Shown here piece by piece: positions 35,101-64,000 of a DNA stretch of 64,000 nucleotides. This DNA is from Phaeosaccion multiseriatum (taxonomy: Eukaryota; Protista; Ochrophyta, other classes). Numbering within the stretch: the stretch's first letter is position 1; the number at the start of each line of letters is the position of its first letter. The stretch covers positions 3,720,001 to 3,784,000 of the forward strand of contig OZ218954.1 of assembly GCA_965112735.1 (NCBI GenBank). Reading direction: 5' to 3'. Below the pieces are notes generated by a model. It saw only the letters and a program-made list of their open reading frames with translations, was not told the DNA's origin and did no database searches. A program made the position numbers and the translations under genes.

Positions 35101-37239
35101 TCTCTCCATCTGTACCTTTCTCCCATCGTCTCTCGCTTCCTCCTCCCCTCTCCCTAACCCCACTCCCTCCCTCTCTCCCTCCCTCCCCTCCTTTCCTCCC
35201 TCCCTCCCTCCCTCCCTCCCTCCCTCTCTCTCTCTCTCTACCCCAACCCAGGCACGGAGGCTGTCCGCACCTACAGCCGCAAGCTCGCTCCCCCCATGGT
35301 CACTCTTCTCAACAGGTGGGCTCTATTCACTGCCTTATGACTGCGCTATTCACTGCCTTATGACTGCTCCAATCACTGCCTTATGATTACAGCGAGCCGG
35401 AGATGCAGTACGTGGCTTTACGTAACATCAACCTCATCGTGCAGAAGCGCCCCAAGATCCTCGAGCACGAGATCAAGGTACCGTAAGGCAATGAAAGGAT
35501 GGCGCTGGAAGGATGGCACCTGAAGGATGGCACTGGATGGAGGGGGTGGCAGCAGTAGGTGGGGGGGTGAGTAGTTGGCCTTTAGCCCTCCCCACACCGC
35601 ACACCCCACAAGTTGGTGATACACCCAACACCCCACACCGCACATTCGACACACCGCTTTTGCTCTCAGGCCTCAGTCGTTAGCCCTGCCTTGTGCCCTG
35701 CCATCATCCACCGCTAACCCCTTGACTTGCCCCATATACCCATATATCTACCGACCGTGACCCCGTTACCCCGTCACCCCATTCCATGAAGGTGTTCTTC
35801 TGCAAGTACAACGACCCCATCTACGTGAAGATGGAGAAGCTCGAGACCATCATCCGCCTCGTCAGCGACAGGAACATCGACCAGGTTAGAGGAATATCGA
35901 CCAGCTTCGAGGCTTACAGGCTTAGAGGCTGCTTCTGCGGGCGTAGCATTCACCTCTGACCGCCCCACCCCGTCGCTCCGTCCCTCCCTGCCCCTCACAT
36001 TGCCGGTCCTCCACTGCCTGTCTCACCATCTGTGACTCCCCGCTGGTGCATGACTGTTTGACCAACACGCCCACTTGTGGCTCACAGGTGCTGCTGGAGC
36101 TGAAGGAGTACGCGCAGGAGGTGGATGTGGAGTTCGTGCGCAAGGCCGTGAGGGCCATCGGCCGCTGCGCCATCAAGCTTGAGAAGGCCGCTGAGAGGTG
36201 AGCGAGATAGAGGCACACAGGCATACATGCATACAGGCATACAGGCATACAGGCAAACAGGCATACAGGCATACAGGCATACAGGCATACGGACATACGG
36301 GCATACAGGCATACGGGCATACGGGCATACAGGCATACATGCATACAGGCATACAGGCATACAGGCAGACGGGCATATGGGCATACAGGCATACGGGTTT
36401 GCAGGCATACGGGCATACAGGCATACATGCATACAGGCATACAGGCACATACAGGCATACAGGCATACGGGCATATGGGCATACAGGCATACGGGCATAC
36501 GGGCATAGAGGCAGGCCTATTCGAAGCGGTCGCAGCACAGCGCACTGAATGTCGATATGCCTCCATCTACAAAATGTCGATATGCCTCCATCTACACAAA
36601 TGTCGGTATGCCTCTATCTTCTAAGTGTCCATGTGCCTCTATCTGCCCCCTCCCCCCTCAGGTGCATCAACGTGCTGCTGGAGCTCATCGAGAACCACAA
36701 GGTGAGTCAGTGAGTCAGTGAGTCAGGACAACAAGGCAGTGAATAAGGACACTAAGTCAGTGAATCAGGACACAAAGGCAGTGAATCAGGACAACAACTG
36801 AAGGTAGTGAGAGGAGGATGACTCACCCCCGCCCTCCCCTTCTCTCTGTAGGTGGAGTACGTGCTGCAGGAGGCCGTGATCGTCATCAAGGACATCTTCC
36901 GCAAGTACCCTAACCGTTACGAGAGCGTCATAGCGGTGAGTCTCTGGCAGTCAGCACCTTCCTTCCAGGTGTCTGTTTCACTCCCTAACCTCCATGGATC
37001 TCCCATTGACTTCCGTTGACTTCCGTTAACGCTGCCAGGTGCTGTGCGACAACTTGGACGTTCTTGACGAGCCCGAGGCGAAGGCTAGCATCATATGGAT
37101 CATCGGGGAGTACGCAGGTGGGTTAGTAAGGCAATGAATCACAGGGGGTGGGGGTAAATTGTCATACGCAGGTATGGCAGTGGCTGTGAGTGAGTGTGTG
37201 AGTGAGTGTGAGTGTGAGTGTGTGTGTGTGTGTGTGAGG

Positions 37240-37277
<38 letters not shown>

Positions 37278-40200: not shown

Positions 40201-40646
40201 CTCTCTCTCCCCCTCTCTCACTTTCTTCCCCCCTCTCTCCTCTCCTCCCCAGATGCACCGCGGCGTGGAGGGCCTCCCCCCCCTCACCATCCCTTCTGTA
40301 ACCGCCAAGCTCGCCGCCTCCGGAGTGTCCTTCGTGGCGGACCGCGCTGCCGAGGGGGGCGTGACTGTGGCGTACTACTCCTTCCGCCTGGCCGGCCTGC
40401 AGATGCTGCTGGAGCTGAGCTTCCCTGCCGCGGTGGGAGGGAGCATTTCTTCTGTGCAGCTTTGCCTCAAGACGGAGCAGGCCGCCTATGCACAGGTGTG
40501 TGTGTGTGTGTGTGTATGTGTGTATGTGGGTGGGTGGGTGGGTGTGGGTGGGTGTGGGTGTGTGTGGGTGTGGGTGTGTGTGTGTGGGTGTGTGGGTGTG
40601 TGGGTGTGTGGGTGTGTGGGTGTGTGTGTGGGTGGGTGTGTGTGTA

Positions 40647-44096: not shown

Positions 44097-44293
44097 GACC
44101 TTGCTCTTTCATCGGGTACCGTGGAACATCGCTGTCCCTCTATCTCCCCTCCCTGACTTACTTCTGCTCTCCGAGCCCCGTGATCATCGCGAAAGAGGAG
44201 GAACTAAAAGTGCTTCGTGAAGAACGTTCCGGCCCCCATGTAGAGGGGCGGGACGCCGTCGCGTACAATAGAGAGGGAGACGATGGAGGAGAA

Positions 44294-45148
44294 ATGATTC
44301 AGCGCTCTGATATTGAGGAAGAGAAGTGGCGGCGCCTCCTGCTAATACCCCCGATATGGCCCCTCTGCAGAAGGGAGGGGGGGGGGGCGCGGGAGGACGA
44401 GCCCTTGCTGCATCGCGGCGATGGGCAAGGGGCTGCAGCAGCCGTTATTGCCGCCCTTGCCGCTGCCGAGCGGGGGGGGAGGGAGCGCGTCGCGTCCTGC
44501 AAACGCTCGCTGTGCCGGGCCGAGAGACAGGCCGAGGCGCAGGAGGCCATCCTGCACGCAGCTTGGCCCGCCTACCAGATGCGGGCCGCGAGAGAGCACT
44601 TCTTCTACAGCCAGCGACTCCTTCACCAGCGGGGCAGGGGGGAGGAGAAGCGACGTATGAGGGCCGCTCTGGAGCGTGCCCTGAGTCTCGCCATGGCCAC
44701 GCAGCGGAGGGAGCGGTGCCTGCTCAGCATGGGCCAAAGGAAGGCGCTTGCTGCTGCTGCTGCTGCTGCTGCTGTTGCTGCTGCTGGTGGGGCATCATAC
44801 CTTGCAGCCGACGACGACGACGACGATGATGATGACGAGGGTGCCCGCTACAGCGCGAGTGGGGAGGACAGTGCCATGGGGAGCGCCACGGAAGCCAAGA
44901 CAGGAGGCGCCCGTCTCAGCAGACGCCGTGGCGAGAAGGCAGCATCCACGCGGGCTTGTGACTTTCCGCAGCGCCCCTCTCGCAAGCAGTGGCCCCTCGG
45001 CCTCCGCCTCCGCTTCAGCGCCTTCAAGGACACCGGCACGGGCCGGCGGGAGGGGCGGGAGGAGGCACACCTCAATGGGGGAGGGGCGGGGGGCGATTAC
45101 TACTCCGAAGGCGGCGAAGTGCCCCTCCTTTCGTCCTCCGGCCTCTGA
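44294..45148 (+). CDS. Hypothetical protein; start uncertain (frame is open from 44051)
   Basis: Open frame with a helical-looking core, polyA and polyD, divergent from METTL26. No recognised domain. Confidence 0.4.
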   Translation: MIQRSDIEEEKWRRLLLIPPIWPLCRREGGGAREDEPLLHRGDGQGAAAAVIAALAAAERGGRERVASCKRSLCRAERQAEAQEAILHAAWPAYQMRAAREHFFYSQRLLHQRGRGEEKRRMRAALERALSLAMATQRRERCLLSMGQRKALAAAAAAAAVAAAGGASYLAADDDDDDDDDEGARYSASGEDSAMGSATEAKTGGARLSRRRGEKAASTRACDFPQRPSRKQWPLGLRLRFSAFKDTGTGRREGREEAHLNGGGAGGDYYSEGGEVPLLSSSGL

Positions 45149-46537
45149 AAAGGCACGGAAGATGCAGTCATGCAGATGCAGTGCAGGTGCAGTCATGAAG
45201 ATGCAGTCATGCAGGTGCCGCTCGTGTGCCTCCCTAGGACTGGGCTTTGATTGATTCCTCCAAGTCCATCTCTCCCCCTTTGCACGGGACCGGCCTCTCC
45301 AGCACATACATGTACATTCTCTCATGAGAGGGAGGGGAGGGGGATGTGCTCGTATCAATGACGGGACTCACACAGCCGGACTTGGCTTGGAAACTTGGTC
45401 AGTCTCATATATCATGGACTTGGCTTGGACCTTTTTCAGTCTCATCATATCACTCTCACCTCCCCTCCTTTGTAAGTATGATACGTAAAAAGGGAAGGGA
45501 CAGAAAAATTAAAGGCGCGCACGGCCAAGGTGATAAGGTGGAGACGAAACGTTACTGAAAAAAAAAATCGTGAGAGTTGAGAGTTGGCACCGCACGCGCA
45601 CTTACATCAACGAGAGGTCTAGTTGGACGAGGCCGCAAAGGCAATTCAAACGAAGGCCGCAAAGGTAGTTCAAACGATGCCAGGCCAAGGGGGGCGTCGG
45701 CGCCACGCCCAAATGCAATAGCCAGAATAGCCAGCGAGCGGCAGGGCGTACTTATGTAACTTATGTGCGGATTGGGTGCCCCTGGGGATTGGGGGGTCCC
45801 AATTTGTTCCCTCGCCTCCCTCGCAGACGAGGATAATCGACGAGGCCCCCATTTTGTTTAGTTATTAGTAGTGTGGGGGAAATTAAGCCCTGCCAAGAGG
45901 GCTTGAAGAGGAGCGGCACAGAGAAGGTGAGCAGACAAGCGCGGCGCAACCATTGACGCGGACTCACGGCTGCTCTATTGCAAGAGATGAAGTCTCAATG
46001 ACTAGGCGTAAAGCAGGCGCCAGTGACACAAAGTGCGGAGGTTGAGGCAACCGCCTTACGCCCTGACCAACCAGACCCCCGCCTACCTTCCTTTTCTCCC
46101 TCCTTCCCATGCTTGCACGTCAGTCAGTGCTGCAGTGAATAGGGTTTTTGGGCTCCCCTCACCGTTTTGGTCCCTCGGCCGGCCCTCCGCTCTCTCGTCC
46201 CTCCTTCCCTTCTTCTCTGTCCCTCTCCCGTTCCTCTTAGAAGGCCAAGTCAACAATTCCATTCCGCCTGAGCCTGCGCTGCTCGACTCTGTGCTTGGCC
46301 GCCATGACGCAGTGGTAGCCAAGCGCATCGGTTGCGAGTGGCGAGTAGCCGAGCCTGGCTGGTGTCTCACCTCCCTCGAGTAGCCTAGCTGGTGTCTCAC
46401 CGGTGTGTCACCTCCCTCGTCGGCTACGGGGCGTGCGGCTGGCTTCGTGGCGGGAGGTCTCCTCTGGCGTTGGGTGGTGCCTGTCTTGCTCATCTGAGCT
46501 GCCTGGAAGGCTGGGCGAGTCGAGCGGGGGAGACAGC

Positions 46538-48070
46538 ATGGTGACGAAGAAGGAGCGTGCGAAGGACAAAAGAAAAAAGTTGGAGGGGTTTCAAAAAGCG
46601 ATGGGTGAGGACAGGGTCAACGATATACGCATAGCGGTGTCCAAGACCCCTGGCAGCAAGGATTTCAAGGATGGTGATGACGCCCACCAGCTTTGGTTTA
46701 AGCACTTCGACGCCTTACGGATGCGAGGCGTCAGAGCCGCGGAAAGAAAAAGCGAAGAAGAGGGACGCCTTCTTACCAACGAAGAGAGGGGCATCATTAT
46801 CGAGCAAGCCAGGGCCCTTATCCCCGAGGGGCCCACGAGTACGGAGCTGGCCGACTATCCGACCTTCAACCCTGGGTGGAACCCCCCGGTCGAAACTTTC
46901 GAGGACTGGTATGCCTTCAAGGCTGGCGTTGAGGGTCATGGCAACCAAGGATCCACTCAGCCCTCCAGCAGCAGTAGCAGTGGCGGCGGTGGCAGCGGTG
47001 GGGGCGGCGGCAGCGCGCCGTCCAAGAAGAAGAAAGGCCAAAAGAAAGGAGGGGCGAGAGCAGTCAAGGAAGAGAAGCCTGAGCCGTCCAAGAAGAAAGG
47101 CCAAAAGAAAGGAGGGGCGAGGGCAGTCAAGGAAGAGAAGCCTGAACCATGCAAGAAGAAGAAAGGCCAAAAGAAAGGAGGGGCGAGAGCAGTCAAGGAA
47201 GAGAAGCCTGAGAGCGCCAAGGGTGTGTCTGTGCCTGGACGAGTAGCGAAGCGAGGAAGAGGAGGAGCGTGTGACAGCCCCGCCCACCCTTGGAGGACCG
47301 ACAAGAAGCCCAAGCGCGAGCACACCAACACCATGGGCAACATGGACAAGATGGGCAAGATGGACATGAAGCACCCTGCCGCCGCGCTGACTCAGGAGGC
47401 TGACTTTGAGCAGTTTGAGCGCCTCGAGTGGGGAGGCACGCCCCTGCTGGACGAGAGCGTCTTGCTGGAGGACAGCGTCTGGCTGGACGAGAGCGTCTTG
47501 CTGGAGGACAGCGAGGCACAAAGCGAGACGCAGGAGGTGCCGTTCGTTCCCGCAGACTCCACCTTGGAGAGCTGGCTTCAAACCGCAGATCCTCAGCCCT
47601 TTCTGCGCGAGGGAGCACAGCTCAGCACGATTACGAGCCCGACAGAGCCGAGCCCGAGCCTCACGGACTTGCCCACCTTCTTCGGCCCCGAGGGTGAGGG
47701 GGAGGTCTGGGCCTCTTCCTCGCCCTCTCCGCCCTGCCCATCGACGTCTCCTCCTCCTACGACAGCGACGCTGCCCGTGGCTGACTCGGAGCTGGGAGGG
47801 GAGCATAGCGACTCGGAGCCCCTCCTCATGCCCCTCCACCTACCCCAGTCCGTCATGATGATGAGCTCGGAGAGGATCCTGGCGGCCCCGATGGGCGCCG
47901 TCGTGGTGGCACCGCACGAGCAGCAGTTGGTGATACAAGAGCAACAGCAGCAGCAGCAGCAGTCATACAGGCAGCAGCAGGTCTTCAAGGCCTGGACATT
48001 GGAGGCGCTGCCCCTCTCGATGGTGCTGGCATTTCTTGACGCGTGTGGTGATGATCGGCATGAGGCTTGA
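46538..48070 (+). CDS. Orphan family A, copy A1 (intronless; N-terminal globular region, Lys-rich NLS-like repeats, acidic/Pro region, polyQ)
   Basis: Intact ORF, paralogous to 50451-52154 and 56162-57964. The ATG in MVTK is shared by all three copies. Confidence 0.75.
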   Translation: MVTKKERAKDKRKKLEGFQKAMGEDRVNDIRIAVSKTPGSKDFKDGDDAHQLWFKHFDALRMRGVRAAERKSEEEGRLLTNEERGIIIEQARALIPEGPTSTELADYPTFNPGWNPPVETFEDWYAFKAGVEGHGNQGSTQPSSSSSSGGGGSGGGGGSAPSKKKKGQKKGGARAVKEEKPEPSKKKGQKKGGARAVKEEKPEPCKKKKGQKKGGARAVKEEKPESAKGVSVPGRVAKRGRGGACDSPAHPWRTDKKPKREHTNTMGNMDKMGKMDMKHPAAALTQEADFEQFERLEWGGTPLLDESVLLEDSVWLDESVLLEDSEAQSETQEVPFVPADSTLESWLQTADPQPFLREGAQLSTITSPTEPSPSLTDLPTFFGPEGEGEVWASSSPSPPCPSTSPPPTTATLPVADSELGGEHSDSEPLLMPLHLPQSVMMMSSERILAAPMGAVVVAPHEQQLVIQEQQQQQQQSYRQQQVFKAWTLEALPLSMVLAFLDACGDDRHEA

Positions 48071-48441
48071 CAGAGTCATGAGAGGCGCTAACGAGGAGGA
48101 AAGGCACTTCTTTCAAGAGTGACCAAGGCTTCACTTCACAGGAGCAAAGCCACGGGGCTACCAGTTCGTGCACCAGCCAGTACGTGCACCAGTACCAAGT
48201 GCATACATCAGGCCATCACGCCGTGGCCATCAAACCGTGGCGAGGGGAGCCGAAGGACCAAGGACACTTCAGGAGGATTGAGGTCACCTCAGGAGGATTG
48301 CGGCAGGGAGTGGTGGCCGGGGGGGGGGTTCGCAGAGGGCATAGAGTAATGCATAGAGCTCTTCTTTGGCAGCGGTTCGTTTTGTGACTGTGAGACTTGT
48401 GTTACAGTGGGGTACTTGTTGTAGTGGGGTAACGGTATTGT

Positions 48442-48592
48442 GAGTTTAATTTATGTCAAATAGTGGAATAGTGGGGCGGCGAGGAGCGGCGAGGAGCGTT
48501 CTGAGTTTAATTTATGTCAAATAGTGGAATAGAGGAGCGGCGAGGAGCGGTTTGAGTTTAATTTGTGTCAAATAGTGGAATAGAGGAGCGGC
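48442..48592. repeat. Three ~50-60 bp tandem repeats (GAGTTTAATTTATGTCAAATAGTGGAATAG...GAGGAGCG)
   Basis: Visible copies inside a ~600-bp segment found only in the inverted arm. Confidence 0.85.
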
Positions 48593-49047
48593 TGTGGCGA
48601 ATTTGAGTGGCGAGACACACGAGAGAGCCGAAGAGAAGGTAACAGGGTGTCTTGTGCCTGCGGGGGGCAGGGGGGGTTGAGGCGTGGGGTGAGGGTCATG
48701 TATGTGGGATCAAAAGAATCAAATCACATTTAAAATGATAAAGGGAGGCCGAGACTTTAGGAAGGTGGCAGGCCATGAGACCAGCCTGCTCATACCCGCC
48801 CCGCTGGGTCACTGGGGTCAACCGGTCGAGTGGGCAGTGGGCAGTGGGGCAGTGGCTGGGCCTGCTCTTCTTTGGCAGCACTCTGCCCCAGCAAACGGCC
48901 GCTCTTTTGTCCTCGAGGGAGCACTTTACATATATATCGTATCGTATGGTGTTGTCACAAAGAGCAGTCAATGAAATGAGTGCGTGGGGGCGTGCGTGAA
49001 ATCGACATCGATTCTTGGCAATTGGAGTTTGCGCTGAAAAGTGTACA

Positions 49048-49227
49048 GCCGTGCCAACAGTGCCCAGTGCGGGGATGGGCTTCTTCAGAGCCCTGCTGTG
49101 CCCCGAGGAGAGAGTGATGCTCGGCCCCGGGGGGGAAGTGCTGCCCCCCGGGGGTAGCTTGACCGCGCTGAGCGACAAGGATGTGCTGGAGATGCTCCCC
49201 TCCTTCGAGGAATTCATGCAGTTGTAG
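49048..49227 (+). pseudogene. Family B 3' fragment (B0), last ~59 codons only
   Basis: AVPTVPSAGMGFFRALLCPEE...SFEEFMQL* is near-identical to the B1 and B2 ends. It is truncated at the inversion junction. Confidence 0.85.
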
Positions 49228-49355
49228 GCATATGGGTGTATATAGGTAGACGACTTTGGAGGCTGGCGACTTGTTGACTGGCCCTAATAGGAATCAACCA
49301 AAGACTTAGGTGCACTGGCGACGGGTGGGGGGTGCACATATGGGGGCGACGCGGG

Positions 49356-49407
<52 letters not shown>

Positions 49408-49628
49408 TGTGTAGAGGGCCCGCTAGGAACCCGTTTAGAAGGGGCGGGGGGGAGGCCATCAGCGCAAACTCCAATTGCCAATAATCGATTTCACGCACGC
49501 CCCCACGTACTCACTGACTGCTCTTCGTAACAACACCATATATAAACTTACATAAACTTACTGCTCCCTCGAGGGCAGCAGAGCGGCCGTTTGCTTGGGC
49601 CAGACGGCTGCCGAACAAGAGCAGGCCC

Positions 49629-50223
49629 CACTGCCTCACTGCCTCACTGCCTCACTGCCTCACTATCTCACTACCTCACTGCCTCACTACCTCACTGCCT
49701 CACTGCCCCACTGCCTCACTGCCTCACTGCCTCACTGCCTTACTGCCTCACTGCCCCACTGCCTCACTGCCTCACTGCCTCACTGCCTCACTGCCTCACT
49801 GCCTCACTGCCTCACTGCCTTACTGCCTCACTGCCTCACTGCCTCACTGCCTCACTGCCTCACTGCCTCACTGCCTCACTGCCTCACTGCCTCACTGCAT
49901 CACTGCTCACTGCCTCACGCGCCTCACTGCCTCACTGCCTCACTGCCTCACTGCCTCACTGCCTCACTGCCTTACTGCCTCACTGCCTCACTGCCTCACT
50001 GCCTCACTGCCTCACTGCCTCACTGCCTCACTGCCTCACCGCCTCACTGCCTCACTACCGCACTGCCTCACTGCCTCACTGCCTCACTGCCTCACTACCT
50101 CTCTGCCTCACTGCCTCACTGCCTCACTGCCTCACTGCCTCACTGCCTCACTGCCTCACTGCCTCACTGCATCCCTGCCTCACTGCCTCACTGCCTTACT
50201 GCCTCACTGCCCCATTGCCCCAC
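49629..50223. repeat. (CACTGCCT)n satellite, ~74 units
   Basis: Tandem 8-mers. Confidence 0.97.
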
Positions 50224-50450
50224 TCGACCGCTCTCAACCCCACTAGCCTCCACTCGACCGCTTGACCCCAGTGACCCCAGTGGGACGTGCTTGACCCCAG
50301 TGACCCCAGTGGGACGTGCATGAGCAGGCTGGTCTGATGGTCTGCTGCCAGCATTCTAAACTCTCGACCTCCCTTTACTATTTCAAGTCGATCTATTGAT
50401 CCCACACGACCCTCCTGCCAGTAGCCTAGCTAGCGCCTCTCATGACTCTG

Positions 50451-50567
50451 TCAAGCCTCATGCCAAGCATCAAGACACGCGTCAAGACACGCCCGCGCCA
50501 TCGAGAGGGGCAGCGCCTCCAATGTCCGTATCTGCCGCTGCCTGTAAGACTGCTGCTGCCTGTATGA

Positions 50568-50631
<64 letters not shown>

Positions 50632-52154
50632 TCTTGTATCACCAACTGCTGCTCATGCGGTGCCACCACGACGGCGCCCATCTGGGCCGCCAGGATCCTC
50701 TCCGAGCTCATCATCATGACGGACTGGGGTAGGTGGAGGGGCATGAGGAGGGGCTCCGAGTCGCCATGCTCCCCTCCCAGCTCCGAGTCAGCCACGGGCA
50801 TCGTCGCTGTCGTAGGAGGAGGAGACGTCGATGGGCAGGGCGGAGAGGGCGAGGAAGAGGCCCAGACCTCCCCCTCACCCTCGGGGCCGAAGAAGGTGGG
50901 CAAGTCCGTGAGGCTCGGGCTCATGAGGAGCAGGAACTCCGAGTCGCCATGCTCCCCTCCCAGCTCCGAGTCAGCCATGGGCATCGTCGCTGTCGTAGGA
51001 GGAGGAGACGTCGATGGGCAGGGCGGCGAGGGCGAGGAAGAGGCCCAGACCTTCTCCTCACCCTCGGGGCCGAAGAGGATGGGCAAGTCCGTGAGGCTCG
51101 GGCTCGGCTCTGTCGGGCTCGTAATCGTGCTGAGCTGTGCTCCCTCGCGCAGAAAGGGCTGAGGATCTGCGGTTCGAAGCCAGCTCTCCAAGGTGGAGTC
51201 TGCGGGAACGAACGGCACCTCCTGCGTCTCGCTTTGTGCCTCGCTGTCCTCCAGCAAGACGCTCTCGTCCAGCCAGACGCTGTCCTCCAGCAAGACGCTC
51301 TCGTCCAGCAGGGGCGTGCCTCCCCACTCGAGGCGCTCAAACTGCTCAAAGTCAGCCTCCTGAGTCAGCGCGGCGGCAGGGTGCTTCATGTCCATCTTGT
51401 CCATCTTGCCCATCTTGCCCATCTTGCCCATCTTGCCCATCTTGCCCATCTTGCCCATGGTGTTGGTGTGCTCGCGCTTGGGCTTCTTGTCGGTCCTCCA
51501 AGGGTGGGCGGGGCTGCCACGCGCTCCTCCTCTTCCTCGCTTCGCCTCTCGTCCAGGCACAGACACACCCTTGGCGCTCTCAGGCTTCTCTTCCTTGACT
51601 GCTCTCGCCCCTCCTTTCTTTTGGCCTTTCCTCTTCTTGGACGGCGCGCTGCCACCGCCGCCCCCACCCCTGCCACCGCCGCCACTGCTGCTGCTGCTGC
51701 TGCTGCTGCTGCCACTAGAGGGCTGCCTGGATCCTTTCTTGGGCTTTTTGCCATGACCCTCAACGCCAGCCTTGAAGACATTCCAGTCCTCGACAGTTTC
51801 CACCGAGGGCGACCACCCAGGGTTGAAGGTCGGATAGTCGGCCAGCTCCGTACTCGTGGGCCCCCCGGGGATAAGGGCCCTGGCTTGCTCGATAATGATG
51901 CCCCTCTCTTGGTTGGTAAGAAGGCGTCCCTCTTCCTCGCTTTTTTTTCCCGCGGCTCTGACGCCTCGCATCCGTACGGATTCGAAGTGCCTAAACCAAA
52001 ACTGCTCGATCTCAGTACGTATCTTCCAACACCTGCTGCCAGGGCTCTGGGACACCGCTATGCGTACATCGTTGACCTTGTCCCGACCGTGCACTTCTTG
52101 AAGCCTCTCCAGCTCTGCTCTTTTGCTTGCCGCACCCTCCTCCTTCGTCACCAT
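50451..52154 (-). CDS. Orphan family A, copy A2 (567 aa)
   Basis: Intact ORF carrying two copies of a 61-aa internal repeat. Confidence 0.75.
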
Positions 52155-53283
52155 GCTGTCTGTCTCCCCCGCTCGACTCGCCCAGCCTTCCAGGCAGCGC
52201 GCTCAGATGAGCAAGGCAGGCACCAGCCAACGCCAGATGAGGCCTCCCGCCACGCAGCCAGCCACACCCCCCGAAGCCGACGAGGGAGCTGAGACAGATG
52301 CGCTTTGACTACCACCGCGTCAAGGCGGTGATGTGCAGAGCCGAGCAGGGCAGACTCAGCAGCAGCAGGAGCGAGGAATGGAATCGTTGCTTGACTTGTT
52401 GGCCTTCTTGTGCTTCTTGTTGTAGTACTAGGCCTTACAGCTGCGGACACATTTCCAGACGGGGCGAGTGGGGGGGTGGGGGTTGAGCGTGCTTGTCCTT
52501 GGCCATCATCAGATTTCCCGCCTTGCTTTTGACTTCTTGCTTCTTCTCGCTCGCAAAACTCAGACTTTCTTTGTCTAGGCAACTCACCTTCTTCTTCTCC
52601 CCCACTAGGCTGTTCCTCTTGTCTTTTCTCTACGTCCCTCGATCTCCCTGGCAGTATGGAAAAGAGGAACGGGAGAGGGACAGAGAAGAAGGGAAGGAGG
52701 GAGCGAGTCGACAGCGGCCGGCCGGCCGGCCGAGCGAGCGAGCACCAATACGGTGAGTCGAGGGGAGCCCAAAAAACCCTATCCACTGCAGCACTGACTG
52801 ACGTGCAAGCATGGGAAGGAAGGAGAATAGGAAGGTGGGCTGGGGCCTGGTTGGTCAGGAAGGCTTGCGTAATAAGGTCCGCACTTCGTGCTCTAGTACT
52901 GGCTGCTATAGACACAAATTTCTCTCTTTCTCTTTCCTTTCTTTTTCCGTGTGCCCGCGTCACTGCTTGCGCCGCGCGGGTCTGCTCACCTTCTCTGTGC
53001 CGCTCCTGTTGTAGCCCTCTTGGCAGGGCTTGGTGAGGCAGGGCTTGGTGTCCAAGAGGAGAGTACTTCAGCGTTGCAAAATCATTTGTGATTGTGATGA
53101 ATGTTTTCACCATGATCCGCAAATCTGTGAGGAGAAAAGTTTCGAGACCCCTAGAGGACCCCCAGGGGGGACGCCGTTCAGAAAAGGTAAAGCATTCCCC
53201 CCTATGCCACTGGCAGCTTGGCCTTCCCCCCTATGCGGTCCACTGGCAGCTTGCACTTGGCCTTCGAAGAAGCACCCTCAGGC

Positions 53284-54752
53284 ATGGCGAACAAGGCGGG
53301 GAACAAGTCGGGGAACAAGTCGGGCGGCAGCAGGAAGAGAACTAAGAAGGACAGAGGTAGCAGCAGCAGCAGCAGCAGCAGCAGGAAGAAGCCCAAGAAG
53401 GCTCTTCCACTGGGGTGTCAGTTCCGCCATCATTGCAGCAGTGCTCCTTTGCAGAACAGGTGCTGCCCATGGTCAAGGCCTTCGAGCAGGGCGTCAGATG
53501 CTTGGAGGCCAGATTCTGTGAGGTAGGAGGAGAAGAGCTGCCGCCCTTCAGCCCCACCACTGCTGGCACAACGACGGCGTTGACGGACACACCATTGGCA
53601 GCACTGCTCCACCAGTCCCAGCAACAAGCCCAACGCCAACACGAAGGCCAGCAAGAAGGCAGTGTAGAGGAAGCACTTCTCGACGCGTTCCAGCAATACG
53701 TGCGGCAGCTGCTGGAGAGGCCCCTGCTGCTGTGCACGGTGGAGGACGAGGTGGCGCTGCGAGGGGTGGGGCGGCGATGGGCTCCCTCCCCAAAGGAAAT
53801 GCTCTCTCAGGTGCAGGAGCTGAGGGCCGAGGGGGAGGGCCTCGGGGAAAAGCTCCAAGACGTCCTCCTTCGGTGGCAGGCGAGCACGAGTGCGAGGCCT
53901 ACTTCTTGCACTCCGGAGCAGCAGGGGGGGCTCCCCATGTACACGAAGAGAGGGAAGGAAGGGGAAGAGCACCAGTGCCAGCAGCAGGAGAGCAAGCTCA
54001 ACCACGAGACCAAGACCAAGGATGCCAACAAGAAGGAGAAGGCCGCCCCTCTTCTTGGCATCGAAGGGAAGGAGGTCGACGAGGCGGCTCTCCACCTCCT
54101 GCGCATCCCCCCCCCGCCTCCTCTCAGCAGGACGATGTCCATGCAGCTCCCGGAGAAGGAGAAGGAGAAGCCGTGTGAGAAAGAGGCACAGCAGGGGGAG
54201 GTGATCAGGGCCTCCTCCAGCAAGAAGGAGGGGGGGCAGTGGGAGGCGGAAGCGGCGGAGAAAGCGCCGCCTCCCAGTCTGGCGCCGGCCGAGGAGGAGC
54301 AGCAGGGCCAACAACTAGCAGCGGTGTAGCAACAACACGCTCAACAACAAGTGGTGGCCTCCACCTGTGCCGGTGCTGCCGCTGGTGACGGGGTAGACTC
54401 GGAGGCGGAGGAGCAGCAGCAAACAGAGCGGCAGCAAACAGGGCGGCAGCAAACACAGCAGCAGCAAGCAGAGCAGGCCACGCAGCAGGAGAAGGCAGCA
54501 GAGGGAGGGGCCTGCCGCAGCAGTACCGACCAAAGCTCCGGCCTGAGCTGGGGCACGGACCTGCCCCTCGAGGCCGTGCCAACAGTGCCCAGTGCGGGGA
54601 TGGGCTTCTTCAGAGCCCTGCTGTGCCCCGAGGAGAGAGTGATGCTGGGCCCCGGGGGGGAAGTGCTGCCCCCCGGGGGTAGCTTGACCGCGCTGAGCGA
54701 CAAGGATGTGCTGGAGATGCTCCCCTCCTTCGAGGAATTCATGCAGTTGTAG
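53284..54752 (+). pseudogene. Orphan family B, copy B1; frameshift and premature stop
   Basis: Relative to B2 there is a 4-bp deletion near 53395 (CCCAAGCAAGAAGG to CCCAAGAAGG) and GAG to TAG at 54327-54329. Confidence 0.8.
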
Positions 54753-55164
54753 GCATATGGGTGTATATAGGCAGACGACTTTGGAGGCTGGCGACTTGTT
54801 GACTGGCCCTAATAGGAATCAACCAGAGACTTAGGTGCACTGGCGGCCGGGTGGGGGGTGCACATATGGGGGCGAAGCGGGGACGCGCGCGTGTGTATGT
54901 GTGTGCGTGTGTGTGTGTGTGCGCGTGTTTGTGCGTGTGTACGTGTGTAGAGGACCCGCTAGGAACCCGTTTAGAAGGGGCGGGGGGGAGGCCATCAGCG
55001 CAAACTCCAATTGCCAATACTCGATTTCACGCACGTCCCCACGCACTCACTGACTGCTCTTCGTAACAACACCATATATAAACTTACATAAGCTTACTGC
55101 TTCCTCGAGGGCAGCAGAGCGGCCGTTTGCTTGGGCCAGACGGCTGCCGAAGAAGAGCAGGCCC

Positions 55165-55914
55165 CACTGCCTCACTGCCTCACTGCCTCACTGCCCCACT
55201 GCCTTACTGCCTCACTGCCTCACTGCCTCACTGCCTCACTGCCTCACTGCCCCACTGCCTCACTGCCTCACTGCCTTACTGCCTCACTGTCCCACTGCCT
55301 CACTGCCTCACTACCTCACTGCCTCACTGCCTCACTGCCTCACTGCCTCACTGCCTCACTGCCTCACTGCCTCACTGCCTCACTGCCTCACTGCCCCACT
55401 GCCTCACTGCCTCACTGCCTCACTGCCTCACTACCTCACTGCCTCACTGCCTCACTGCCTCACTACCTCACTGCCTCACTGCCTCACTGCCTCACTGCCT
55501 CACTGCCTCACTGCCTCACTGCTTCACTGCCTCACTGCCTCACTGCCTCACTGCCTCACTGCCTCACTGCCTCACTGCCTCACTGTCGAACTACCTCACT
55601 GCCTCACTGCCCCACTACCTCACTGCCTCACTACCTCACTGCCTCACTGCCCCACTGCCTCACTGCCTCACTGCCTCACTGCCTCACTGTCTCACTACCT
55701 CACTGCCTCACTACCTCACTGCCCCACTACCTTTCTGCCTCACTGCCTCACTGCCTCGCTGCCTCACTGCCTCACTGCCTCACTGCCCCACTTCCTCACT
55801 GCCTCACTATCTCACTGCCTCACTGTCTCACTACCTCACTGCCTCACTGCCTCACTGCCTCCCTGCCTCACTGCCTCCTCCCTGCCTCACTGCCTCACTG
55901 CCCCATTGCCCCAC
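55165..55914. repeat. (CACTGCCT)n satellite, ~94 units
   Basis: Tandem 8-mers at the same position in the unit as the 49629 array. Confidence 0.97.
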
Positions 55915-56161
55915 TCGACCCCTCTCAACCCCACTAGCCTCCACTCGACCGCTTGACCCCAGTGACCCCAGTGGGACGTGCTTGACCCCAGTGACCCCAG
56001 TGGGACGTGCTTGACCCCAGTGACCCCAGTGGGACGTGCATGAGCAGGCTGGTCTGATGGTCTGCTGCCACCATTCTAAACTCTCGACCTCCCTTTACTA
56101 TTTCAAGTCGATCTATTGATCCCACACGACCCTCCTGCCAGTAGCCTAGCTAGCGCCTCTG

Positions 56162-57964
56162 TCAAGCCTCATGCCAACCATCAAGACACGCGTCAAGACA
56201 CGCCCGCGACATCGAGAGGGGCAGCGCCTCCAATGTCCGTATCTGCCGCTGCCGGTAAGACTGCTGCTGCCTGTATGACTGCTGCTGCTGTTGCTCTTGT
56301 ATCACCAACTGCTGCTCGTGCGGTGCCACCACGACGGCGCCCATCGGGGCCGCCAGGATCCTCTCCGAGCTCATCATCATGACGGACTGGGGTAGGTGGA
56401 GGGGCATGAGGAGGGGCTCCGAGTCGCTATGCTCCCCTCCCAGCTCCGAGTCAGCCATGGGCATCGTCGCTGTCGTAGGAGGAGGAGACGTCGATGGGCA
56501 GGGCGGAGAGGGCGAGGAAGAGGCCCAGACCTCCCCCTCATCCTCGGGGCCGAAGAAGGTGGGCAAGTCCGTGAGGCTCGGGCTCATGAGGAGCAGGAAC
56601 TCCGAGTCGCCATGCTCCCCTCCCAGCTCCGAGTCAGCCATGGGCATCATCGCTGTCGTAGGAGGAGGAGACGTCGATGGGCAGGGCGGAGAGGGCGAGG
56701 AAGAGGTCAAGACCTCCCCCTCATCCTCGGGGCCGAAGAAGGTGGACAAGTCCGTGAGGCTCGGGCTCATGAGGAGCAGGAACTCCGAGTCGCCATGCTC
56801 CCCTCCCAGCTCCGAGTCAGCCATGGGCATCGTCGCTGTCGTAGGAGGAGGAGACGTCGATGGGCAGGGCGGAGAGGGCGAGGAAGAGGTCAAGACCTCC
56901 CCCTCATCCTCGGGGCCGAAGGGGGGGGGCGAGTCCGTGACGCTCGGGCTCGGCTCTGTCGGGCTCGTAATCGTGCTGAGCTGTGCTCCCTCGCGCAGAA
57001 AGGGCTGAGGATCTGCGGTTCGAAGCTGACGCTCCCAGGCGGAGGGCCAGCCCATGTTTACGAGGGCGAGTGGCGTCTCCTGCGTCTCGCTTTGGGCCTC
57101 GCTCTCCTCCTCCTCCTCCTCCTCCTCCTCCTCCTCCTCCTCGAGGTCAGCCGGAGTCAGCTCGGCGGCGGTGTGCTTCATGTCCATCTTGCCCATCTTG
57201 CCCATCTTGCCCATCTTGTCCATCTTGCCCATCTTGCCCATCTTGTCCATCTCGTCCATGTTGCCCATCTTGCCCATGGTGTTGGTGTGCTCGCGCTTGG
57301 GCTTCTTGTCGGCCCTCCAAGGGTGGGCGGGGCTGTCACGCGCTCCTCCTCCTGCTGCTGCTGCTCCTGCTCCCCCTCCTCTTCCTCGCTTCGCCTCTCG
57401 TCCAGGCACAGACACACCCTTGGCGCTCTCAGGCTTCTCTTCCTTGACTGCTCTCGCCGCCCCTCCTTTCTCTTGGCCTTTCTTCTTCTTGGACGGCGCG
57501 CTGCCGCCGCCCCCACCGCTGCCACCGCCGCCACTGCTACTGCTGCTGGAGGGCTGAGTGGATCCTTGGTTGCCATGGCCCTCAACGCCAGCCTTGAAGA
57601 CATTCCAGTCCTCGACAGTTTCAACCGAGGGCGACCACCCAGGGTTGAAGGTCGGGTAGTCGGCCAGCTCCGTACTCATGGCCCCCCGGGGGATAAGGGC
57701 CCTGGCTTGCTCGATAATGATGCGCTTCTCGTCGTCGCTCTTGATTTCCTTGCAGCCTCCGGCGGCTCTGACGCCTTGCATCCGTACGGATTCGAAGTGC
57801 CTAAACCAAAACTGCTCGATCTCAGTACCTGTCTTCCAACACCTGCTGCCAGGGCTCTGGGACACCGCTATGCGTACATCGTTGACCTTGTCCCGACCGT
57901 GCACTGCTTGAAGCCTCTCCAGCTCTACTCTTTTGCTTGCCGCACGCTCCTCCTTCGTCACCAT
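56162..57964 (-). CDS. Orphan family A, copy A3
   Basis: Intact ORF from the MVTK ATG at 57964, with three copies of the 61-aa repeat. Confidence 0.75.
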   Translation of the reverse strand: MVTKEERAASKRVELERLQAVHGRDKVNDVRIAVSQSPGSRCWKTGTEIEQFWFRHFESVRMQGVRAAGGCKEIKSDDEKRIIIEQARALIPRGAMSTELADYPTFNPGWSPSVETVEDWNVFKAGVEGHGNQGSTQPSSSSSSGGGGSGGGGGSAPSKKKKGQEKGGAARAVKEEKPESAKGVSVPGREAKRGRGGGAGAAAAGGGARDSPAHPWRADKKPKREHTNTMGKMGNMDEMDKMGKMGKMDKMGKMGKMGKMDMKHTAAELTPADLEEEEEEEEEEEEESEAQSETQETPLALVNMGWPSAWERQLRTADPQPFLREGAQLSTITSPTEPSPSVTDSPPPFGPEDEGEVLTSSSPSPPCPSTSPPPTTATMPMADSELGGEHGDSEFLLLMSPSLTDLSTFFGPEDEGEVLTSSSPSPPCPSTSPPPTTAMMPMADSELGGEHGDSEFLLLMSPSLTDLPTFFGPEDEGEVWASSSPSPPCPSTSPPPTTATMPMADSELGGEHSDSEPLLMPLHLPQSVMMMSSERILAAPMGAVVVAPHEQQLVIQEQQQQQSYRQQQSYRQRQIRTLEALPLSMSRACLDACLDGWHEA

Positions 57965-58895
57965 GCTGTCTCCCCCGCTCGACTCGCCAAGCCTTCCAGG
58001 CAGCTCAGATGAGCAAGGCAGGCACCAGCCAACACCAGAGGAGGCCTCCCGCCACGCAGCCAGCCACACCCCCCGAAGCCGACGAGGAAGCTGAGACACC
58101 AGCTACTCGACTTGCGCCACCGACGATGCGCTGTGACTACCACCGCGTCAAGGCGGTGATGTACAGAGCCGAGCAGGGCAGACTCAGCAGCAGGAGCGAG
58201 GAATGGAATCGTTGACTTGGCCTTCTTGTGCTTCTTGTTGTAGTACTAGGCCTCACAGCTGCGGACACATTTCCAGAAAGTTAGTGTAGGGGGGGGTTGG
58301 GCGTGCTTGTCCTTGGCCATCAGATACCCCCGCCTGTCTAGGCAACTCATCACCTTCTTCTTCTCCCCCACTAGGCTGTTCCTCTTGTCTTTTCTCTACC
58401 TCCCTCGATCTCCCTGGCAGTGTGGAAAAGAGGAACGGGAGAGGGACAGATCAGAAGAAGGGAAGGAGGGAGAAATTCGACAGCGGCGGCCGAGCGAGCA
58501 ATACGGTGAGGGGAGCCCAAAAAACCCTATCCACTGCAGCACTGACAGACGTGCAAGCATGGGAAGGAAGGAGAATAGGAAGGTGGGCTGGGGCCTGGTT
58601 GGTCAGGAAGGCTTGCTTAAAAGGTCCGCACTTTGTGCTCTAGTACTGCTATAGACACAAATTTCTCTCTTTCTCTTTCCTTTCTTTTTCCGTGTGCCCG
58701 CGTCACTGCTTGCGCCGCGCGGGTCTGCTCACCTTCTCTGTGCCGCTCCTGTTGTAGCCCTCTTGGCAGGGCTTGGTGAGCAGGGCTTGGTTTTGTGTTT
58801 TTGAGCACAACTCCCAGGGGGGACGACGGGTTTTAGGGTGAAGCACTGGTTAAGCATTTCCCCCCTGCTTTCATTTTTTGTTAAGCACCCTCAGC

Positions 58896-58958
58896 ATGGC
58901 GACCAAGGCGGGGAACAAGTCGGGCGGCAGCAGGAAGAGAACTAAGAAGGACAGAGGT

Positions 58959-59001
<43 letters not shown>

Positions 59002-60371
59002 AGAAGCCCAAGCAAGAAGGCTCTTCCACTGGGGTGCTAGTTCCGCCATCATTGCAGCAGCGCTCCTTTGCAGAACAGGTGCTGCCCATGGTCAAGGCCT
59101 TCGAGCAGGGCGTCAGATGCTTGGAGGCCAGATTCTGTGAGGTAGGAGGAGAAGAGCTGCCGCCCTTCAACCCCACCACTGGTGGCACAACGACGGCGTT
59201 GACGGACACAGCATTGGCAGCACTGCTCCACCAGTCCCAGCAACAAGCCCAACGCCAACACGAAGGCCAGCAAGAAGGCAGTGTAGAGGAAGCACTTCTC
59301 GACGCGTTCCAGCAATACGTGCGGCAGCTGCTGGAGAGGCCCCTGCTGCTGTGCACGGCGGAGGACAAGGTGGCGCTGCGAGGGGTGGGGCGGCGATGGG
59401 CTCCCTCCCCAAAGGAAATGCTCTCTCAGGCGCAGGAGCTGAGGGCCGAGGGGGAGGGCCTCGGGGAAAAGCTCCAAGACGTCCTCCTTCGGTGGCAGGC
59501 GAGCACGAGTGCGAGGCCTACTTCTTGCACTCCGGAGCAGCAGGGGGGGCTCCCCATGTACACGAAGAGAGGGAAGGAAGGGGAAGAGCACCAGTGGCAG
59601 CAGCAGGAGAGCAAGCTCAACCACGAGACCAAGACCAAGGATGCCAACAAGAAGGAGAAGGCCGCCCCTCTTCTTGGCATCGAAGGGAAGGAGGTCGACG
59701 AGGCGGCTCTCCACCTCCTGCGCATCCCCCCCCCGCCTCCTCTCAGCAGGACGATGTCCATGCAGCTCCCGGAGAAGGAGAAGGAGAAGCCGTGTGAGAA
59801 AGAGGCACAGCAGGGGGAGGTGATCAGGGCCTCCTCCAGCAAGAAGGAGGGGGGGCAGTGGGAGACGGAAGCGGCGGAGAAAGCGCCGCCCCGCAGTCTG
59901 GCGCCGGCCGAGGAGGAGCAGCAGGGCCAACAACTAGCAGCGGTGGAGCAACAACACGCTCAACAACAAGTGGTGGCCTCCACCTGTGACGTTGCTGCCG
60001 CTGGTGACGGGATAGACTCGGAGGCGGAGGAGCAGCAGCAAACAGAGCGGCAGCAAACAGGGCGGCAGCAAACACAGCAGCAGCAAACAGAGCAGGCCAC
60101 ACAGCAGGAGAAGGCAGCAGAGGGAGGGGCCTGCCGCAGCAGTACCGACCAAAGCTCCGGCCTGAGCTGGGGCACGGACCTGCCCCTCGAGGCCGTGCCA
60201 ACAGTGCCCAGTGCGGGGATGGGCTTCTTCAGAGCCCTGCTGTGCCCCGAGGAGAGAGTGATGCTCGGCCCCGGGGGGGAAGTGCTGCCCCCCGGGGGTA
60301 GCTTGGCCGCGCTGAGCGACAAGGAGGTGCTGGAGATGCTCCCCTCCTTCGAGGAATTCATGCAGTTGTAG
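58896..60371 (+). CDS. Orphan family B, copy B2 (intact, intronless; N-terminal NLS-like basic patches, helical core, Q/E-rich linker, hydrophobic C-terminal motif)
   Basis: Open ORF MATKAGNKSGGSRKRTKK...MLPSFEEFMQL*, head-to-head with A3. Confidence 0.72.
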
Positions 60372-60610
60372 GCATATGGGTTTATATAGGCAGACGACTT
60401 TGGAGGCTGGCGACTTGTTAGCTTGGCCCTAGTGTTGTAAGTCGATGCCAGTTGTGATCTGTCCCCGGTGGGCACACGAGCTGCTGACGCATGGCAGGAG
60501 CTCGAGGTCCTCTCTCAGAGCCTGGTTGTGTGAGGATAGAGCAGCCAGCAGGCTTGCTCTGAGGGCCCACACTTGTCTAGTAGTCTAATTGACTCTTTAC
60601 AGCCTGACTA

Positions 60611-61364: not shown

Positions 61365-64000
61365 TCACTGATTGTCGATGAGGAACACGTCTGTGCAGAA
61401 CTGAAAGTTGTCCGAGCCCATGCACTGCTGCAGGCCCCCGCTGGCCAGTCCCACCACCAAGTACAGCAGGGGCTTGCGCAGCGTCTCGAACAGCCCGAAG
61501 AAGGCAGCCGATGACAGGGCGGCGCTGCTGTAGCGACGGGCCCACTCCCCGGGGGTCCGCTTCAGCATCTCCGCGCGTTGTTCCTCTCCGCCGTAGCTGG
61601 TGGAGAATGAGGAGAGGGGGTGGGGGAGGGATGTGAGGGGGAGGGGAGGAGTGGGGGGAGGAGTGGGCAGATGGTGATGGCTTCGGTAGGCAGGCAAGTG
61701 CCGAGCACAGGAAGGAGGAGCAGGAGGAGCAGAAGAAGCCAACCGCACTCTCAGTCTCTCATTCACTCACTTCCTCATCACCCACCTCCCTCTGAGGTGA
61801 TTCCTATCAAGTCAAGACATACCCGCCACCTACCCTCCCCCTCCGAACTCACCCCGTGGTATAGAGCGTAATGTCCCTGTACACCTGGCTGGACAGGGCT
61901 GCCAGAGCGCCGAACCCCGCTGCGGTGGGCCCGTCAAGCATCTGCAGAGTGTCAGGACAGGAAGGGGGGGGGGGTCAGGACAGGGAGCAGGGGTGTCAGG
62001 ACAGGGGCAGGGACAGGCTGGCGAGTGCTGGGGAGTAAGGCCGCGTGCGTGATTGAGGACGAATCCGCCCCACCCCACCCAACCCCACCCTGCTTGCTGC
62101 CCGCTTGCTGTTGCTGGTCTATGCCCAAAACTCACTCCCTCCCTCCGTCCCTCCCTCCCTCCCTCCCTCCCTCCCTCCCTCCCTCCCTCCCTCCCTTCCT
62201 CTCTCACTCACCCTTGCGCCATGTGTGGAGGCAAAGTCTGAGGCAAGCACATCGTACTCGAGCCACTTGATGATGTCCGTCATCACATCAACATAGTCGA
62301 AGCCCGCCAGCCTGGCCAGCAGCCCCCCTCCTCCTCCTACCCCCCCCCTCTCTCCGCTGCCCCTGCCTCGCTTCATGAGCCCTGCTCGCACCGCCGCACC
62401 CCCCTGGACGGGCTTGAGCGCCATGGGGCGAGGCGGCACCATGTCCTTCTTTTTGGGCAACAAAGCACCCCACATGCTCGGCCTGCACGCACGCACGCAC
62501 GCACGCACGCACACACACACATGGTCAGTGGTCAGTGGTCAGTGACAGGAGGAGTGGGGGGAGCGAGGGAAGCGAGGGAGGGTGCGCCACCATCACCAGT
62601 ACCATCACCATCACCATCACCATCACCATCACCATCATCATCACCATCACCATTAAAAGCCATCACCATCACCATCACCATCACCATCACCATCACCATT
62701 AAAAGCCATCACCATCACCATCACCATCACCATTAAAAGCCATCACCATTAAAAGCCATCACCATCACCTTCACCATCACCATCACCATCACCATTAAAA
62801 GCCATCGCCATCGCCAGGCACAAGACACCCCCCCCCCCTGCGACTCACGCACGCACGCACCCACGCTCCTCTTTTCCCACAGGCCCACGACCGTGCCTTC
62901 AACACCACACAGGCACCCACACACGCACCCACACACAGGCACCCACACACGCACCCACACATACACGCACATACTCACCTATACATCTTCCCGCGCTGCT
63001 TGCCGTTGCCAGCCGCCCCATCCACTACCATCCCGCCGGTCCTTGAGCTCATCTTGGCATTGGCCTTGATGAGTTGGTAGGGGATTTGGGCAAGCAGCAG
63101 AGCGGCGCCACTCGACGCGCCACCGCCCAGGCCCAAATTCTGACGGACGGGAGGGAGGGAGGGAGGGAGGGAGGAAGGAAGGAAGGAAGGAAGGAAGGAT
63201 AGAGCGGGTGAGGGAGGGAGGGGGGAGGGATGAGGCTCCCCTCGAGCAGCGGGACACACACGCTATATATTCCTGCCTTTCATTGTACCGATAGAAGCGG
63301 CCCACTTGGCCTTCAAGAAGCGGCTTTGGCTTTGCCCTCCCCATCCACTGCCATCTCTCCTTCACCCTCCATCCACTGCCATCCCCCACTCACCCCGAGC
63401 ACGGCCTCCGTCGCTGTCCACGCGTAAATAAAGTCCGCCCTCGCCACGGCCTCGCTGAACTGAGACTGCCCTCCACTGCCATCCCCGTCCGCTGCCATCC
63501 CCCCTTCACTGTCATTGCTATCCGCCATCCATGGCATGGTGAGGGCCATCCATCGCTTTGCCCCCTCGGGACTGTAGCGCTGCACGAGCGCTGGAGTCAC
63601 ACTGAAGAGGTATACCAGGGCTGAGCTGATGAGGCCTAGGGGATGGCAGTGGATGGAGGGTAGGGGGGGCAAAGGGGGTTAGAGGGACGGGACGCGAGTG
63701 GTGACGAGTGGTGAGGCATTCATGGGAAGGCCGGGTGGGAGGTGCCAGGACAAAGACGAGACAGAGTGTCAGGACAGGGAGGGAGGTGTCAGGACAAGAC
63801 CGTTTCGTGCCTCACGGGACATGCGAAGGACGCGAAAGGGAGGGAGGGGACATCAGGCAGACCCTCCCTCCCGAATGCTTTCTTCCTCCAGGGTGAGGGG
63901 ACAGGATGCACACACAGCCCAGCACAGCAGTTGGTGATACAGCACAGCCAGGCAGCACAACCCTCTGGCCAGCCGTCGGGTGCCTTCTGATGTATCATAC
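61365..64000 (-). CDS. Hypothetical multi-exon, probably membrane, protein; 3' part only
   Basis: Coding-like exons bounded by GT-AG near 63393-63636, 62979-63140, 62210-62482 and 61365-61597. Hydrophobic segments include AALSSAAFFGLFETLRKPLLYLVVGLASGG. Ends CMGSDNFQFCTDVFLIDNQ*. Confidence 0.6.

Follow-up and report, generated by a model that had tools for sequence, protein, structure and literature searches.

The subject of this analysis is a small gene array in the ochrophyte alga Phaeosaccion multiseriatum, lying in a 64,000-nucleotide stretch of contig OZ218954.1 (assembly GCA_965112735.1, forward-strand positions 3,720,001 to 3,784,000). We refer to this whole stretch as the window and use its own numbering throughout. 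Two genes without sequence similarity to one another, here called A and B, occur in the array as intact, broken and partial copies. A reading of the bare sequence (hereafter the original prediction) had described them as an amplified head-to-head pair of intronless orphan genes and proposed that they form an undescribed two-component system. The coordinates confirm the order it gave, with three copies of A: A1 on the plus strand, a B fragment (B0), A2 (minus strand) with B1 (plus strand), and A3 (minus strand) with B2 (plus strand).

Self-comparison of the window revealed a tandem unit of ~5.6 kb, present ~2.04 times between 49048 and 60431 (copy 1, 49048–54811; copy 2, 54573–60431). The two unit copies share 95.2% identity across 5356 aligned bases, with a baseline of 97–99% and a few local dips. 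Each unit runs from a B tail through (GT)n, a spacer segment S, (GCCTCACT)x75–94 and a 29-bp repeat to A on the minus strand, an intergenic region of ~1 kb and B on the plus strand. Copy 1 opens with B0 (49048–49227, plus strand), which consists of the last 59 codons and stop of a B gene and is 93% identical to B residues 437–497. It continues with a spacer (49359–50323) containing (GT)27, segment S, (GCCTCACT)x75 and the 29-bp repeat, then A2 (50451–52154, minus strand), an intact open reading frame (ORF) of 567 codons, the A2–B1 intergenic region (52155–53283), in which no frame has coding potential, and the broken B1 (53284–54749, plus strand). Copy 2 comprises a spacer (54887–56043; GT-rich repeat, segment S, (GCCTCACT)x94 and the 29-bp repeat), A3 (56162–57964, minus strand; an intact ORF of 600 codons), the A3–B2 intergenic region (57965–58895) and B2 (58896–60371, plus strand), the sole intact B, with 491 codons from its ATG. 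Start codons on opposite strands are 1130 nt apart for A2/B1 and 932 nt apart for A3/B2, in line with the divergent arrangement and spacing of about 0.9–1.1 kb first reported.

To the left of the tandem array, and abutting the B0 tail, is an inverted partial unit (45885–49040) that carries A1. It begins with the A1 upstream region (45885–46537, plus strand; promoter or 5' untranslated region), an inverted copy of part of the A–B intergenic region; homology to the tandem unit stops at 45885, and 45885–46238 matches 58774–58428 at 80% identity (blastn). A1 itself (46538–48070, plus strand) is an intact ORF of 510 codons. Between its 3' end and the inverted spacer lies an insert of ~700 bp (48097–48790) that is single-copy genome-wide, within which a 51-bp tandem repeat (2.5 copies) occupies 48481–48608. 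The inverted spacer copy (48795–49040, minus strand) holds what is left of the 29-bp repeat and of the 8-bp satellite, together with a segment S', and 48858–49037 on the minus strand matches the tandem-unit spacer at 78%. S' (48885–49040) and S (49455–49615) form an inverted repeat flanking the B0 tail and (GT)n. B0 lies at the midpoint of the fold-back and forms the left edge of the tandem array. The ratio of intact A to intact B genes is 3:1. No copy of A, B, the spacer or the 700-bp insert was found beyond the locus in the 67-Mb genome (22 contigs). The contig is 4.38 Mb long and ends ~600 kb from the locus, a distance on which a subtelomeric position was rejected.

This combination of inverted and tandem copies has the pattern of a fold-back duplication preceded or followed by duplication through unequal crossing over, a mechanism that we infer from the arrangement. 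The fold-back inverted duplication would have yielded A1, and unequal-crossover tandem duplication of the 5.6-kb unit would have yielded A2/B1 and A3/B2. Gene conversion may afterwards have mixed blocks between copies while repeat modules grew and shrank in frame.

Coding signature and divergence of the copies

Coding potential was scored with a codon table built from 30 conserved host exons (HSP70, tubulin and kinase; 7121 codons), whose GC contents at the three codon positions (GC1/2/3) are 0.60/0.39/0.76. The A and B copies have GC3 values of 0.73–0.78, and their sense frames score +0.18 to +0.25 bits/codon (+0.217 for A1), with the five other frames negative and a six-frame pattern like that of the training genes. 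Every frame of the intergenic region, of the spacer and of a 324-amino-acid intergenic ORF scores negative. Tandem-repeat periods within the ORFs (3, 9, 12, 15, 18, 24, 36, 63 and 183) are all multiples of 3; outside them most are not (2, 8, 14, 16, 20, 29 and 38) and a few are (51, 24 and 15). Likewise, indels between A2 and A3 are multiples of 3 in 12 of 12 cases, compared with 7 of 25 in the non-coding DNA of the same units. When the observed private substitutions (73, 38 and 73) were placed at random on the majority sequence, the joint probability of all three A copies remaining stop-free under neutral substitution was 0.0013. Host-like codon use, in-frame indels and stop avoidance thus indicate that A has been selected for an open frame. 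B2 shares the coding signature of A and, judged by these signatures, both A and B are real coding sequences.

Two spacer ORFs (49591–50323 and 55127–56014) were rejected as genes: they are translations of the 8-bp satellite in two frames (220–295 amino acids, "LPHCLTAS") and artefacts of its repetition (x75 at 49625–50224, x94 at 55161–55915). The satellite GCCTCACT has ~990 32-mer matches genome-wide, on at least seven contigs. Intron absence, which the original prediction had treated as a distinctive property of A and B, is not unusual here, intronless genes being frequent: of the best 30 kinase domains, at least 11 are contained entirely in a single open frame, and many kinase domains are fully enclosed by open frames whose length runs from several hundred to over 2000 codons.

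Divergence among the A copies is strongly patchy. The 100 nt before the ATG are 94–97% identical among all three. In the next 200 nt (codons 1–63), identity is 97% between A2 and A3 and 77–78% between A1 and either of them (22% diverged). Codons 64–97 are diverged in A3 alone, in which poly-Glu also replaces the acidic-hydrophobic tract, and the remaining blocks are 96–100% identical between copies. Although the ratio of replacement to silent divergence (dN/dS, or omega) is ~1 for the whole gene, codons 1–63 differ between A1 and A2 by 42.3 replacement and 2.7 silent changes, and the comparison of A1 with A2/A3, which uses three sequences only and involves clustered, multi-nucleotide changes, gives dN 0.352, dS 0.073 and omega 4.8 (Fisher p = 0.006). 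Changes in this block by codon position number 23, 15 and 7. The adjacent motif STELADYPTFNPGW..VET.EDW..FKAGVEGHG (codons 101–137) shows the reverse, with omega 0.13 for A2 against A3 (p = 0.02).

Silent divergence in the N-terminal block resembles that of the rest of the gene, which points to a fast-changing protein segment rather than an ancient allele, and the N-terminal block is apparently under diversifying selection. The A copies are mosaics in which each of the three possible pairings is favoured by some block, which argues for gene conversion among the tandem and inverted copies. Our data suggest that selection holds all three A copies open, conserves a Pro/Trp-rich motif (residues ~100–135) and drives replacements across codons 1–63, where a helical module is predicted. 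The conflict-type evolution originally proposed for the locus finds a counterpart in this N-terminal block; no feature that defines a toxin-antidote, allorecognition or mating-type locus was found alongside it.

The B copies have fared differently. Relative to B2, B1 is missing 4 bp (CAAG at B2 59006–59009), giving a frameshift after codon 36, and carries a nonsense change (GAG to TAG, 54327–54329). The two differ at ~1.6% of sites (9, 8 and 5 changes by codon position), a pattern of neutral divergence, as expected if B1 is dead. A GT..AG pair at 53357–53421 in B1, 65 nt long and with an 84-nt counterpart at the corresponding position of B2, would bring B1 back into frame if spliced. We gave this rescue no weight, as the splice-site contexts are poor, chance pairs are expected and the TAG at 54327 persists. 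The claim that A and B were duplicated together holds for the 5.6-kb tandem unit at 95% identity. A1, however, was duplicated without any B, B1 is broken and B0 is a tail only. Surplus B copies appear to be decaying while A persists in three copies, and such retention of A alongside decay of extra B argues against an obligate A–B pair.

Protein features and searches for relatives

As read from the sequence, A begins with a helical N-terminal module, followed by the conserved Pro/Trp motif and a Ser/Gly linker. Its middle part contains one to three Lys-rich repeats of 21 amino acids (PSKKKKGQKKGGARAVKEEKPE), the basic patches KRGRGG and KKPKRE, a (KMG)n tract and an acidic-hydrophobic tract, and it ends in one to three Pro/Ser modules of 61 amino acids, poly-Gln and a short Cys-containing tail. 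Module numbers vary between copies: in A1 the 63-nt basic repeat is present three times and the 183-nt module once, and in A3 the 183-nt module occurs three times. B consists of a basic N-terminus (RKRTKK, poly-Ser, RKKPK), long helices, K/E-rich and Q-rich tracts and a C-terminal motif of 60 amino acids, the tail of B2 being rich in Gln and Glu. The patches resembling nuclear localization signals (NLS) in both proteins and the disordered acidic, Pro/Ser and Gln tracts are thus present as first described. Neither protein has a signal-like peptide at its start (on reading the sequence) or any predicted membrane segment.

AlphaFold2 modelled the A N-terminus as a low-confidence module of four to six helices (predicted local distance difference test score, pLDDT, 57) and B2 as mostly disordered with a few long helices (pLDDT 47). 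A complex prediction for A3 residues 1–140 with B2 returned an interface score (ipSAE) of 0.01, which weighs neither way on pairing. The composition of both proteins fits nuclear, disordered regulator or scaffold proteins. If so, A would be a largely disordered nuclear protein in which the variable N-terminal helices set partner specificity, the Lys-rich repeats confer nuclear import and contact with nucleic acid or chromatin, and the acidic-hydrophobic and Gln-rich tails serve as effectors or drive condensate formation. For B, the corresponding reading would be a nuclear protein in its own right, coiled-coil or disordered, linked to A by position only.

Database searches returned no relative of either gene, as the original prediction had anticipated. 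No domain was found in A1–A3, B1 or B2 with Pfam (E-value ≤ 1) or PHROGs; a TFIIA match over poly-Gln (21.9 bits, below the cut-off) was dismissed as low-complexity noise. A word-indexed search of 5.8 billion proteins with A residues 1–140, whole B and B residues 40–215 yielded no relative. A profile of the A N-terminus run with HMMER against 1.84 billion representative proteins gave three weak matches, rejected as unrelated tandem-repeat proteins that score through 6–9 stretches. IMG/VR and JGI metagenomes held no A or B relatives, the ESM Atlas feature search found none, and a PDB sequence search gave no meaningful match. A Foldseek comparison of the A N-terminal model, suggested alongside the original prediction, identified no fold (best E-value of 2 against the PDB; template-modelling score ≤ 0.41 against the Atlas). 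The reported absence of transposase, reverse transcriptase or other known domains was borne out by Pfam, PHROG, transposable-element and viral searches, and integrase and capsid were also absent from the Pfam and PHROG scans of the A and B copies, as were homeodomain, HMG, nuclease, kinase and other effector domains. By orphan we mean a gene with no relative outside this lineage, the searches not having reached related eukaryote genomes. With a coding signature and no detectable homologues beyond the lineage, A and B qualify on sequence grounds as taxonomically restricted genes.

Competing explanations and known systems

We consider it fairly likely that A and B are members of a young, fast-evolving orphan family, probably encoding nuclear disordered proteins, caught up in fold-back and tandem amplification. 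Several points weigh against this reading. The coding and selection evidence comes from copies in a single genome of one strain, and the public sequencing runs that contain the locus are four from one sample, with DNA-like contigs covering genes and intergenic regions alike. Given its overall dN/dS of ~1, much of A may be nearly unconstrained, and omega can be inflated by clustered multi-nucleotide changes and by codon bias that constrains silent sites. For its nuclear and regulatory part, the reading draws on sequence motifs and composition.

The original prediction proposed a candidate two-component conflict system for A and B, of the toxin-antidote or drive, allorecognition or mating-type-like kind. 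On such a reading the products would interact, and joint function would be the reason for joint amplification. Their head-to-head orientation across a common intergenic region of 0.9–1.1 kb, the amplification in copy number with gene conversion, the strong replacement excess in the A N-terminal block and the NLS-like patches in both proteins would all suit such a system, but nothing shows A and B working as a pair. Neighbouring genes are copied together in any segmental duplication, so a single such event suffices to explain the joint amplification and functional coupling is not required. Moreover, one of three B copies is intact, A1 was copied without B, and no effector domain was seen in the Pfam and PHROG scans. 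Both genes do co-occur in this genome, being confined to one locus, but A1 has no B partner there, and the proposal as a whole is unlikely. That A alone, with or without B, may be the specificity subunit of an undescribed algal system of self/non-self recognition or mating compatibility is a decidedly remote prospect, argued by analogy: its hypervariable N-terminal helices would discriminate partners, and amplification and gene conversion would create new specificities. Such a system would resemble the fungal homeodomain (HD) loci in function while belonging to an unrelated protein family. It is similarly improbable that the ORFs are not genes at all but frames left open by chance in DNA rich in GC and repeats, or pseudogenes that died recently. 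The overall dN/dS of ~1, the lack of homologues, the DNA-like public runs and the long ORFs antisense to A and B might suggest as much. However, host-like codon use is restricted to the sense frame, indels are in frame without exception, stops are avoided and the conserved motif is under purifying selection. The antisense ORFs occupy the codon-aligned reverse frame, have negative codon-use scores and stay open because a stop there requires TTA, CTA or TCA on the sense strand, codons that are rare; they are the usual by-product of high GC3.

The original prediction also recognized that a mis-assembly of haplotypes could mimic such an array, and copies that are 95–99% identical, with short-read contigs breaking at copy differences, are what the joining of haplotypes or collapsed reads in tandem might produce. 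We regard this as very unlikely. Three distinct A genes, each with its own divergent blocks and number of modules, are too many for the two alleles of a single gene, and each copy has its own context (the unique insert at 48097–48790, the B0 junction, the right flank). B1-type and B2-type letters also occur in short-read contigs at similar depth in four runs (e.g., 105/202 at 59597 in run X1), and the assembly has 22 contigs for 67 Mb. Least credible to us is an origin of the cassette in a mobile element or integrated virus, whether as cargo or as coding sequence. While the intronless ORFs, the flanking repeats and the inverted repeat S'/S around the B0 tail are suggestive, A, B, the spacer and the 700-bp insert are confined to one locus, codon use is host-like and the inverted repeat belongs to the fold-back duplication. 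Transposable elements and endogenous viruses are recognized by dispersed copies, hallmark genes or both; here there is one locus, without transposase, reverse transcriptase, integrase, capsid or any PHROG match in the scans and without relatives in IMG/VR.

The closest known systems include young orphan gene families that sit in segmental duplications, and ampliconic or palindromic arrays subject to gene conversion. They too lack homologues outside their lineage and encode mostly disordered, low-complexity proteins, in inverted and tandem copies 95–99% alike that form gene-conversion mosaics, with some copies kept, others decaying and replacement rates raised. In contrast to them, the A/B array is small (three copies) and lies in an autosome-like context. 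Basidiomycete HD1/HD2 loci share the divergent gene pairs duplicated as sub-loci, a layout known at A/B from sequence. In A, as at these loci, a hypervariable N-terminal region of helices precedes NLS-like and activation-like stretches. However, neither A nor B has a homeodomain (Pfam at E-value ≤ 1; PDB sequence search empty), the host is an alga whereas these loci are fungal, the copies within a single haplotype are paralogues rather than alleles, and one B is broken. The wtf poison-antidote drive genes of fission yeast are comparable in being a fast-evolving, multicopy, lineage-specific family with in-frame variation in repeat number and non-allelic gene conversion. They encode transmembrane proteins, and one gene produces two transcripts, whereas A and B are two separate genes without predicted membrane segments. 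Toxin-antidote systems in general call for two parts that are both intact and always co-occur, and the locus has three intact A, one intact B and an A1 without B.

The locus is a small, clean case in which fold-back and tandem amplification, gene conversion and selective sorting lie side by side: of the two genes, one is retained in triplicate and has a hypervariable module, and the other is decaying. It adds two protein families without relatives; no new mechanism is shown. If A is expressed and nuclear, its hypervariable block of 63 codons beside a conserved motif would be a tractable candidate for recognition or conflict in a little-studied algal lineage.

Genomic surroundings

Upstream of A1, the closest gene that can be recognised as conserved has several exons and encodes beta-adaptin-like peptides (36085–40510, plus strand). 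Just left of the inverted copy, a stretch of 301 codons (44243–45145, plus strand), unrelated to B, has a weak positive codon score (27 bits in total) and no Pfam match. An Rfam search of 43–64 kb gave no match. Downstream of B2, 62588–62816 holds a (CACCAT)n array broken by TAAAAGC, with a higher-order period of 46 bp.

Tandem arrays are common in the genome, among them a kinase array with a 5.2-kb period on another contig (G000:C7:266351-292150). It contains at least five equal-scoring copies, with one TGA inside each match, and a sixth, differently scoring copy at its end. Identical dnaK ORFs of bacterial/plastid type (open frame of 626 amino acids) are present on two small contigs (G000:C18:92678-94450 and G000:C21:26761-28533). 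The duplicate may reflect a plastid genome that entered the assembly twice, a copy in an inverted repeat or contamination, and a plastid-type dnaK is compatible with a red-lineage plastid.

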